Shown here one piece after another: positions 29,418-32,400 of a stretch of DNA of 64,000 nt. A model generated the notes under the pieces. The model saw only the letters and a list, made by a program, of their open reading frames with translations. It was not told the origin of the DNA and searched no databases. A program made the translations under genes and the position numbers. The first letter of the stretch is position 1. The number at the start of each line of letters is the position of its first letter. The DNA is taken from the NCBI GenBank assembly GCA_964035545.1, contig OZ037765.1, positions 4,350,698-4,414,697 of the forward strand. The letters are read 5' to 3'. The stretch comes from Bugula neritina. Lineage: Eukaryota; Animalia; Bryozoa.

Positions 29418-32400
29418 ATGCAGAGAGACAGGCTACTTTGGTGTGTTGGCACTGTGGTGGTGCTGGTTTGTGGGTTTACTCACGGTGCACCAGTGAATCC
29501 CAATCCTAACATACCAGATGTTAAAGAAAACACAGATCCTATGGACGTATGTTTAACTCCTATGTGTCTACAGCTAATAGACATGCTGCTCTTATTGTAG
29601 AATAATTGAATTGTTGAACAGATATTTAAATTTTATTGACAACATAGTTGATGTCACAAGTGGATTATTCTTTGAAATTTTATTGTAATGCACAACTTTA
29701 AGGTCAATGCTTGCAAAATGCTTTGAAAATGTTTCGTCAGTTTCATCTCAACTGATTACAGGATAATTTTCTCTCATTGGAATACAAGAAATACTTAGAA
29801 GAAGTAGTGCAACTCCTAGAGTCGGATGAGGGTTTCAAAGCCGAACTTGACAAAATGAACGCTGAAGGAAAAGACGACTTAGCTGTATGTGTGTAACTTT
29901 ATCACTTTGTATGATCATTGTAGAGGCCACAGTTGCTCGAGTTGGAGTATCAAGAGTATCTTAATCAAACCATTTACATTCTGGAAGACGACCCAGAATT
30001 TAGGAAGTTTGTTGCTAATCTCTCAACTGAAGAAGTTCAGGTTCATTTGACGCTCTGTTTATTCTCACGCCAGCTTTCTCCCGTTGCTCAACTAACATAA
30101 TATTTCAGTATACAGTTGATTGTTGTTATAGAGTCAGCTTTGAGGTATAGTCAGCTTAAAGGTGTAGAGGGAGTTTTGAGATATAGAGGGAGTTTTGAGG
30201 TGTAGAGTCAGCTTAAAGGTGTAGAGGGGGTTTTGAGGTGTAGAGTCAGCTTAGAGGTGTAGAGTGGCAACAATGGTCTACCTTCTTTAGTTTCTTAAGT
30301 GGAGCTGTCAATTGGTTAGTTTCAGGTGGCTGTACTCCTTGTTTTTCTTATATGTATGTTCTTTTACTGAACTGAATAAAAAATAAATTAAAGTATTTTC
30401 ATGTTTAATTCCAGTAGCTTGATTCGGATGCTATTACGATATCATGAGTAGTCTCAGTTATCATTGGTTCTAATGTTTGTATCTGAATCAGTGTTGTAGC
30501 TCTTCCCCCTTCCCATCTCCTCTATTCTGACTATTGCTATGCTAACTTGATGGTTGTATTGAACAGCAGGGGATTATAGAGGAAGTCTATTCACATTATT
30601 CACTGCTTGGTGCCAAACACACTATTTATACATTCTTCTGGGTCATTTAGGGTATAATAATAGTTTATCTCAGAATTGTATTCAACTGTATGCCAGTGAC
30701 AATAAGCTACATACAACTGAGCTTTTGTAAACTTGTAGAGTGGCCAGATAGCTCATTACCTCCAGTTTGCTAACAAACAGACCAGAACTAAACTTGATGA
30801 ACTAAAGAGACTAGAGGTGAGACGGTTAAGAGATCTTCACAAGAAGTTGATGAGAGAAACTGCCGGTTAGTGTTCGAATTTGATTTGTAATCGTAAATGG
30901 AATGAATAGTTTTGGATGTGCAACGACTCTTGCAGGTTGTCTTTCATTTATATACATGTTGAACTTTTTTATTTGGTGTTTTTTCTAACAGAGGTCCTTT
31001 ACTTAAATCTGCTTGTGATGCCGATGGTTTGGTCACAAGGCAAATTAAATTTCCATGCTGCATGAAAAATCGTGTGCCATGTGATTTTCAGCATATTTTG
31101 AGTTCTGGGAACTTTTTATAGTAAATTATCTTCTCAGTCGCAATTTTATGTCAATGCCTAATATAATTAGTGTACTGTGTTCAAACTCAACTCAAATGTT
31201 AGATATATATTATACACTTTGTATTGTCAATGTAGATGAAATAAGGGCCGGTAAAAGAGATCCTAAAGGTAATCAACTCTGCTTGAACCCTAACTAACTC
31301 AGTTAACCTACCTATGCTGTCCTTACCTAACTCTACATTCACCTGCTCTGTGCATTCTTACCTAACTCTAAATTTTCTTAGTTTTTCCTTAACCAATGTT
31401 ATTTTATTTCAGCTTCTTATTCTTCTGTTATCAAACACTGTAATGCTTAATGAATTCCTGCTGTTTTATTGGCTGCGGAGAGTTTCATTTGCTACTTGGA
31501 GTTTTGTTATGCAGCTAATAGATGCCTGGCAATATATAGAAAATCTGCTTATGAAAAGCGCAATAATTAAATAACTGAGTTGTTTGCCTATGTTATCATA
31601 GAGCTTTGAATGTTGCATGCTAAAACTATCTATGCAACTTGAACCTGTTTAGTTTGATTTTATCACATCACATCTAACTGAGCAGGTGAACTCTATATGA
31701 TTAGTCACTCTGGTATACTCTTGTAGACTTGCCTGCTGTGGACTCTGAGCACATGGACCACAGCAACCCACATACTTTCGAAATTGAAGATCTGAGGAAG
31801 TTGATTAAAAAGGTAGTTGGTTTTGTCACCTTTATGTGATGAATTGCACTTTTCAACAGTTCCGTAGTTGTAATAGAGATTGAGGAACTATTCTTATAAT
31901 TGAATCACTTTGCTTTTTAGCAAACAAAATATGCAAATTTTAATTTACAATCTACATGCTTCATGTATGCACTTTTATGATTTTGAATAGATTTCTCAGC
32001 TGCTAATTTTCAACGTTATCACATTTTAAAAGTTTTCATGAAATTGCTGGTTAGTTCATTGTTGACTGACTGATTGACTGACTGACTGACTGTGACTGTG
32101 GGAATGTGACTAAGTAGCCAGTCACATTCTCTGATAAATATGTATGAGATCACATGATTTAGTGTTGCACCTGTTACATCAAAAAATATTGCATCAATTG
32201 AGCAAATAAGAATAAAGTTTGCCTTGACAGCTGTTATTTTCAAAATCCATCTCTCTATTTCTCCCAAAGTTAGCGAGGTGTTACAACTTATATTTTACAC
32301 GTTATATAATATGCACATTATCAGTTTCATAAGAATCATAATAGCAGCTAATCAGTAAGTGGGAATAAACATGTGTCAGTATTTAGTGTTATAACTCCAG

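Follow-up and report, generated by a model that had tools for sequence, protein, structure and literature searches.

The window analyzed here is a stretch of 64,000 nt from the bryozoan Bugula neritina (assembly GCA_964035545.1, contig OZ037765.1, positions 4,350,698 to 4,414,697), and all coordinates are positions in this window. On its + strand lies a gene that its sequence matches clearly identify as a nucleobindin of the NUCB1/NUCB2 family, and in this gene the middle exon of the nesfatin-1-like N-terminal coding region has been duplicated in tandem. The two copies, exons A and B, are very probably truly mutually exclusive, both being conserved coding exons. The 5' part of the gene is laid out as follows:

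29418..29546, + strand: coding part of exon 1, with the ATG, a signal-peptide-like hydrophobic stretch and the N-terminus to ..TDPMD (from translation and RNA contigs)
29762..29884, + strand: exon A, 123 nt = 41 codons, phase 0-0, TTACAG upstream and GTATGT downstream
29885..29923, + strand: spacer between A and B, 39 nt, GT..AG
29924..30040, + strand: exon B, 117 nt = 39 codons, phase 0-0, TTGTAG upstream and GTTCAT downstream
30739..30865, + strand: exon 3, in both isoforms, SGQIAHYLQFANKQTRTKLDELKR.. with the dibasic KR (LDELKR), ending in phase 1
31236..31268, + strand: micro-exon, a 33-nt cassette, ..EIRAGKRDPK.. (RNA joints)
31727..31812, + strand: constitutive exon, ..DLPAVDSEHMDHSNPHTFEIEDLRKLIKK (RNA joints)
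32616..32801, + strand: constitutive exon, TTDDL..KVNHP (joint 31812>32616 in 4/4 runs, and tblastn)

The family assignment comes from exons of the window searched singly, never joined into one spliced protein. A downstream exon (35840-36022) matches EF-hand_1 and EF-hand_5 above their cut-offs. The search with this EF-hand exon returned nucleobindins, the closest being the RefSeq nucleobindin-2-like isoform X2 of the bryozoan Watersipora subatra (P0002), and this orthologue matches nucleobindin 1 of PDB code 1SNL with E = 2e-28. Exon 3 matches Pfam NUCB1_N at positions 66-104 with 40.0 bits (cut-off 27). At the other end of the coding region, the start codon of exon 1 is followed by the hydrophobic stretch LLWCVGTVVVLVCGF, which reads as signal-peptide-like from the sequence alone, and exon 1 has a GTATGT donor in phase 0.

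Comparison of the two copies identifies them as paralogous, with a likeness beyond chance at the level of the peptides. Exon A encodes DNFLSLEYKKYLEEVVQLLESDEGFKAELDKMNAEGKDDLA and exon B encodes RPQLLELEYQEYLNQTIYILEDDPEFRKFVANLSTEEVQ; BLASTP aligns the two with 11/32 identities (E = 1e-6). Searched alone against Pfam PF25434 (NUCB1_N, cut-off 27), A scores 35.2 bits over positions 32-62 and B scores 27.4 bits over positions 31-64. The pair thus shows the features by which tandem exons are recognized, namely adjacency, similar length (123/117 nt), the same phase 0-0 and shared Pfam positions, and the preliminary description of this stretch, which had proposed two adjacent paralogous phase 0-0 exons at 29762-30040, is borne out. 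The copies are not equivalent. Exon A is the one nearest the consensus YL.EVV..LE.D and contains no N-X-S/T sequons, and exon B has two of them (NQT and NLS) and a weak donor, CAG/GTTCAT. Between them, the spacer continues the frame of A as V-C-V-stop, the in-frame TAA lying at 29894-29896. The other RNA-supported introns over 29200-32900 measure 215, 698 (854 if B is skipped), 370, 458 and 803 nt, and because they thus span 215-854 nt, the 39-nt spacer is a clear outlier. Its being the shortest intron, its stop codon and the LDELKR site in the translation of the following exon had all been noted beforehand, and all three hold.

The duplicated exon occupies a defined place in the family. The nesfatin-1 region of bilaterian nucleobindins is split by two phase-0 introns (PMC9004410), and the duplication described here affects the exon between these introns, with a phase-0 end of exon 1 and phases 0-0 of A and B confirmed by RNA. 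Alignment of a vertebrate-like NUCB2 (P0099) agrees with the earlier proposal that the segment corresponds to the middle stretch of vertebrate nesfatin-1. Like vertebrate NUCB2/nesfatin-1 and NUCB1, the bryozoan protein has a signal peptide (putative here), the NUCB1_N domain, an EF-hand pair matching 1SNL and a KR site after ~82 residues, and the vertebrate genes likewise carry a mid-segment exon between two phase-0 introns. Unlike them, the bryozoan gene has an exclusive exon pair, none being known in vertebrates. The absence of such a pair from vertebrate NUCB1/2, to which the preliminary description had pointed, holds in the annotations and papers searched. More broadly, the public annotations and the literature searched contain no exclusive exons in any nucleobindin, and our literature search found no paper on a nucleobindin in Bugula or on exclusive exons in bryozoans. 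The type of splicing is well known; its occurrence in a nucleobindin is previously undescribed in the annotations and literature searched.

RNA contigs provide the evidence for the choice between the exons. A run search gave twelve RNA-like runs holding words of the exons only, plus one DNA-like run with 70% of the words. The RNA contigs of four runs (X1, X2, X3 and X9), from four independent studies, were aligned to 29200-32900; these are assembled contigs, in which rare variants are dropped, and the depths and isoform ratios taken from them are rough. Exon 1 is covered at 29397-29545 in all four runs and is joined to either 29762 or 29924. The joint of exon 1 to A (29546>29762) is present in 4/4 runs, with depth 141-214 in runs X2 and X3, and the joints to exon 3 from A (29884>30739) and from B (30040>30739) are each found in four of four. 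The joint of exon 1 to B (29546>29924) is found in runs X2 and X3 only, at depth 66-72. Neither a joint of A to B (29884>29924), nor a 39-nt deletion, nor a direct joint of exon 1 to exon 3 occurs among the contigs of the four runs. All four junctions predicted in the preliminary description are therefore found in these contigs, and the one predicted to be missing is missing.

Single contigs connect these joints. In record 20 of run X9 (400 nt) a 5' leader and exon 1 are followed by A and by 30 nt of exon 3, and record 16 of run X3 (177 nt) contains 30 nt of exon 1, the whole of B and ~30 nt of exon 3. Messages routinely carrying both exons, the outcome named beforehand as damaging, were not seen: the sole contig with A and B, record 21 of run X9 (181 nt, depth 75), covers 29860-30040 unbroken, with the stop-bearing spacer unspliced between them. 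This record represents a specific A-spacer-B RNA rather than DNA or general pre-mRNA, because the other intron bins of run X9 are at zero depth. By contig depth exon A is the major alternative and exon B the minor one, the share of B ranging from a few percent (runs X1 and X9) to roughly a quarter to a third (runs X2 and X3).

Both exons are already present in public models of the same gene or its orthologue. For Watersipora, RefSeq isoform X1 (P0151) has A and B in tandem, isoform X2 (P0002) has A only, and isoform X3 (P0152) has A only with the micro-exon absent. For Bugula neritina, GenBank KAF6023687 (P0273) has A+B, and KAF6038461 (P0155) has the first half of A fused to B; these two models are 95-100% identical to the exons of the window. 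The public models are thus A+B, A alone or an A/B chimera, and the B-only isoform, which is present in the RNA contigs here, is absent from all five models found. The chimera can be traced to the assembly. In the GenBank B. neritina genome (GCA_010799875.2; locus L002, 3325-3446) exon A has a 1-nt deletion that turns GATGAGGGTTTC into GATGAGGTTTC; this deletion creates a false GT donor, which explains KAF6038461. The RNA contigs have no gap at the site.

At silent sites, several percent separate the window from both the RNA runs and the GenBank B. neritina contig; the introns align at ~89%, with insertions and deletions. The differences of the RNA runs from the window within B match the GenBank contig. 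On these sequence differences the window probably represents either a separate lineage within the B. neritina complex or a close congener, and the GenBank contig serves below as a second Bugula lineage.

Related genomes and substitution patterns, to which the preliminary description had pointed as checks, both favor maintenance of the two copies. The A/B pair is found in Watersipora subatra and in two further relatives, neither copy having decayed, and the spacer is short and its retention non-productive in every lineage compared:

Window: spacer 39 nt, retention giving an in-frame TAA
B. neritina GenBank assembly (L002): spacer 39 nt, retention giving an in-frame TAA
Watersipora subatra (L001): spacer 51 nt, retention giving an in-frame TAG
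Relative 3 (Logan contig, L003): spacer 74 nt, retention giving a TAG and a frameshift
Relative 4 (two ENA contigs, L010 and L011): spacer 65 nt, retention giving a frameshift

The introns before A and after B in these loci are 215-698 nt long. In relative 3, a JGI transcript (L012) starts inside B and continues directly into exon 3, and transcripts P0153 and P0270 carry A only. Over 29 core positions, A exons share 21-25 identities with one another and B exons 15-25, A and B share 8-12, and either type shares 9-17 with outgroups; across species A exons group with A and B exons with B. This grouping by exon type is consistent with a single old duplication after which the copies diverged along separate paths, and on the sequence comparison the duplication predates the split of Bugula, Watersipora and the two further relatives. 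The segment is single-copy among 130 other nucleobindins, and in eight arthropod species the isoforms do not differ in it. When region 75-116 of P0151 was used to look for further B-type segments, it matched only itself in the protein collection, and a profile built from four B exons gave a single candidate without a score; the length and word filters make both blanks uninformative.

Between the window and the second Bugula lineage, exon A has four changes, all synonymous, and exon B has 7.5 synonymous against 1.5 non-synonymous changes. Between Bugula and Watersipora synonymous sites are saturated, with non-synonymous divergence (dN) of 0.35 in B and 0.10 in both A and exon 3. Judged by these substitutions exon B is under purifying selection, evolving faster than A yet clearly constrained.

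What the exchange would do to the protein can be read from the conserved positions and from a model of the domain. Both exons preserve the invariant core residues Y, Y, L, L, E, D and F and differ at the remaining positions. The ancestral K/EEVV motif is retained in exon A; exon B retains the ancestral DPEF motif, as well as the C-terminal ..N-x-S/T..[DE][IV][KQ] pattern. The B exons of all four species have two sequons (NQT or NET, and NLS or NIT), with none in any A exon; the second sequon is also present in scallop, Owenia, a rotifer and a mite. The solved structure in the family covers the EF-hand domain only. We refer here to an AlphaFold model of the natural Watersipora A-type domain, computed with an alignment of database proteins and representing the A form only (mean pLDDT 83). 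In this model the swapped exon is predicted as two short helices (residues 12-24 and 26-33; pLDDT ~91) plus a linker, and a long predicted helix that contains the KR follows the swapped segment. The difference between the isoforms would lie in a helix-turn-helix that opens the NUCB1_N domain. Since the protein bears a putative signal peptide, the exon choice would yield a predicted unglycosylated A form and a predicted glycosylated B form of one lumenal or secreted calcium-binding protein. We put forward this difference in glycosylation tentatively, as a prediction from the sequons to which we give somewhat less than an even chance.

The anatomy of the pair suggests how exclusivity could be enforced. 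In this view A and B would form a single composite element that has two acceptors and two donors. Pairing of acceptor A and donor A would give the A isoform, that of acceptor B and donor B the B isoform, and use of acceptor A together with donor B would leave an unspliceable, stop-containing spacer, the form found in run X9. A limit of ~50 nt from donor to branch point, set in vertebrates, has been proposed for joint binding of U1 and U2 (PMC7969005). Any branch point of B lies at most ~30 nt from the donor of A, the whole intron being 39 nt, which is well below this limit; candidate branch-point motifs in the spacer, by reading of the sequence, are TGTAAC, TATCAC and TGATC. The 39-nt spacer would have to hold the donor of A, the branch point of B and a pyrimidine tract. 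Since both signals would lie in this one spacer, U1 at the A donor and U2 at the B branch site could not sit together; use of the B acceptor would exclude the A donor, and vice versa. Were the A acceptor and the B donor both used, the spacer would be irremovable and its TAA would give a truncated, probably unstable message, a second safeguard. The unspliced A-spacer-B contig fits this steric model. The donors have opposite designs, that of A having a weak exon side and a strong intron side (GTATGT) and that of B the reverse. The weak intron side of the B donor recurs across species (GTTCAT, GTCTAA or GTTCAA), and this weakness fits B as the minor, regulated choice. Steric enforcement, drawn from this anatomy, is the course that we favor with some reserve. 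Competing RNA pairings were sought in an inverted-repeat scan, which gave 18 short pairs; those touching splice sites (I8 and I14/I2) have changed without compensation in the second Bugula lineage and were set aside as chance.

The closest known systems are exons 2/3 of alpha-tropomyosin and exons 4a/4b of OGDH, which are sterically enforced mutually exclusive exons (PMC7969005). The nucleobindin pair resembles both in being a tandem duplication with the upstream donor near the downstream branch site (< ~50 nt), and in all of them the intron between the copies has stayed constrained in length over long spans of evolution. In alpha-tropomyosin and OGDH the intron is longer and the branch point displaced, whereas in the nucleobindin pair the whole intron is 39 nt and the branch points are candidates only. 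The fail-safe also differs, as it consists here of a stop codon in the retained spacer and not of a frameshift, both exons being multiples of three.

Another explanation would have A constitutive and B an ordinary cassette that follows it, with a long isoform that carries the segment twice. Both exons being multiples of three, double inclusion would stay in frame once the spacer is spliced, and two public models, P0273 of B. neritina and P0151 (isoform X1) of Watersipora, are drawn in this way. The RNA makes this extremely unlikely, as the A-to-B joint is missing from all four runs, direct joints of exon 1 to B occur, one contig reads exon 1-B-exon 3 without A, and A and B occur on one contig only with the stop-bearing spacer kept; moreover, P0273 belongs to a draft annotation in which the sister model, P0155, is plainly in error through the 1-nt assembly deletion. 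The same spacer-retaining contig could instead mark B as mainly a poison element, the A-spacer-B stop message lowering the output of nucleobindin with no second protein isoform. In run X9 it is indeed the sole B contig upstream of the joint of B to exon 3, and the joint of exon 1 to B is not listed there. A role of this kind is nevertheless very unlikely for an exon whose open frame and splice sites are intact in four species despite saturated synonymous sites, whose non-synonymous changes are about 5 times fewer than synonymous ones between the Bugula lineages, and whose productive exon 1-B-exon 3 form reaches about one quarter to one third of the contig depth in runs X2 and X3. If the exons are exclusive, exclusivity could also be imposed by competing RNA pairings, by tissue-specific repressors or by nonsense-mediated decay of double-inclusion transcripts. 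The relatives give this room: they keep the pair with spacers of 51-74 nt, relative 3 has a CTAAC ~50 nt from the A donor, a distance that may suffice for splicing, and retention of the spacer is non-productive in all four species, through a stop or a frameshift. We regard such a mechanism as unlikely, since no complementary arms survive comparison with the second Bugula lineage and the spacer is short in every lineage beside neighboring introns 3 to 15 times longer, as a length constraint predicts.

A last alternative concerns the product. The preliminary description had proposed that the gene yields two alternative nesfatin-like peptides, which would be secreted, cut at the KR of exon 3 and endowed with different activities. 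Counted exon by exon from the predicted signal cleavage, the N-terminal product before the KR would have 20 + 41 + 22 = 83 residues for A and 20 + 39 + 22 = 81 for B. In its favor, the swapped exon corresponds in alignment to the middle part of vertebrate nesfatin-1, and the gene has a putative signal peptide, the KR site and the two phase-0 introns (PMC9004410). The KR, however, lies inside the long predicted helix; the two sequons of B suit a folded lumenal protein better than a small hormone. Nucleobindins, for their part, act mainly as full-length Golgi calcium-binding proteins. Two such peptides are for these reasons improbable. We are equally doubtful of the wider proposal that exon choice switches the nesfatin-1-like core between an unglycosylated and a doubly N-glycosylated state, so as to give two hormones or cargo specificities tuned by zooid type or life stage; the receptor of nesfatin-1 is, to our knowledge, still unknown.

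Mutually exclusive use of A and B, with steric enforcement and a difference in glycosylation, has several points against it. At silent sites the lineage behind the RNA runs is ~5-8% diverged from the window, the joint of exon 1 to B is listed in just two of the four runs, and the assembly of contigs leaves room for low-level A-to-B splicing. In their models, RefSeq isoform X1 of Watersipora (P0151) splices the 51-nt spacer and GenBank KAF6023687 (P0273) of B. neritina includes both exons. Introns of ~40 nt are spliced in some animals, and the spacers of the relatives, at 51-74 nt, are at or above the length expected for steric exclusion; these longer spacers and the isoform X1 model of Watersipora are the chief grounds for caution over the steric step. 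For Bugula, the literature search found no intron-size statistics. The steric step, resting on candidate branch points and on a threshold set in vertebrates, is likely but unproven, and the differences in glycosylation and function are predictions only. Taken as a whole, the combined statement of an exclusive pair, steric enforcement and a glycosylation difference nonetheless seems to us probable.

The same gene shows further alternative exons. A second exclusive pair lies at 33675-33765 and about 34550-34640, ~785 nt apart, its second copy reading GNKEQLEEVWEEEDKMNADSFDPKAFFMLH. These exons are 91 nt each, so that use of both or of neither shifts the frame. Transcripts P0153 and P0270 of relative 3 differ exactly at this pair, as do isoform X1 and isoforms X2/X3 of Watersipora; the JGI transcript L012 lacks both exons of the second pair and is frameshifted. 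The micro-exon is included through joints 30865>31236 and 31268>31727 in 4/4 runs, and the skipping joint 30865>31727 is found in run X9 only (depth 412 versus 1039). Its Gly-Lys-Arg motif is GKR in the window and GNR in Watersipora.

Other observations concern the flanks and introns. Low-depth transcription covers 30439-30766, the last 300 nt of the intron and unbroken into exon 3, in all four runs at ~2-4% of exon depth. Compared with the second Bugula lineage, this segment is more conserved than the remainder of the intron, and a TAG at 30736-30738 closes the frame just before exon 3; the transcription could reflect an internal start or partial retention of the intron. In all four runs ~100 further 5' letters precede 29397 and match nothing in 29200-29396, and they therefore belong to an upstream non-coding leader exon. 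An extended three-base repeat, with homopolymer-like sequence after it, occupies 33055-33582 within a nucleobindin intron, and a similar run lies at 22090-22640. The next gene downstream (38324-42395, + strand) is CHIP/STUB1-like, with TPR repeats and a U-box. A CHIP-like neighbor also follows the nucleobindin in Watersipora (L001, 22268 onward), and gene order is thus conserved. A second, much more diverged nucleobindin-like gene lies on the minus strand of the same genome (C2:5782699-5785812, L009), with exons such as IEYSRYLKQVSELLEADESFQ and ..SKLDELKRIEVRRLKDLHKK..; within this 3-kb locus a second copy of the A/B-type exon was not found, only one copy being present.

These results correct the public nucleobindin gene models in two bryozoan genomes and provide a clean, RNA-supported case of exclusive exons across an ultra-short intron, in a phylum whose splicing has hardly been studied. 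The short spacer, kept over deeply diverged lineages, offers comparative support for a length constraint like that of OGDH. Combined with the second exclusive pair and the micro-exon, the A/B choice could allow as many as eight isoforms from the gene. The pair also supplies two naturally selected versions of the most studied nucleobindin segment, one of them with conserved sequons, which are open to expression and comparison. If the exon choice is truly a glycosylation switch of the nesfatin-like core, it would amount to a natural structure-function experiment on the mid-segment of nesfatin-1.

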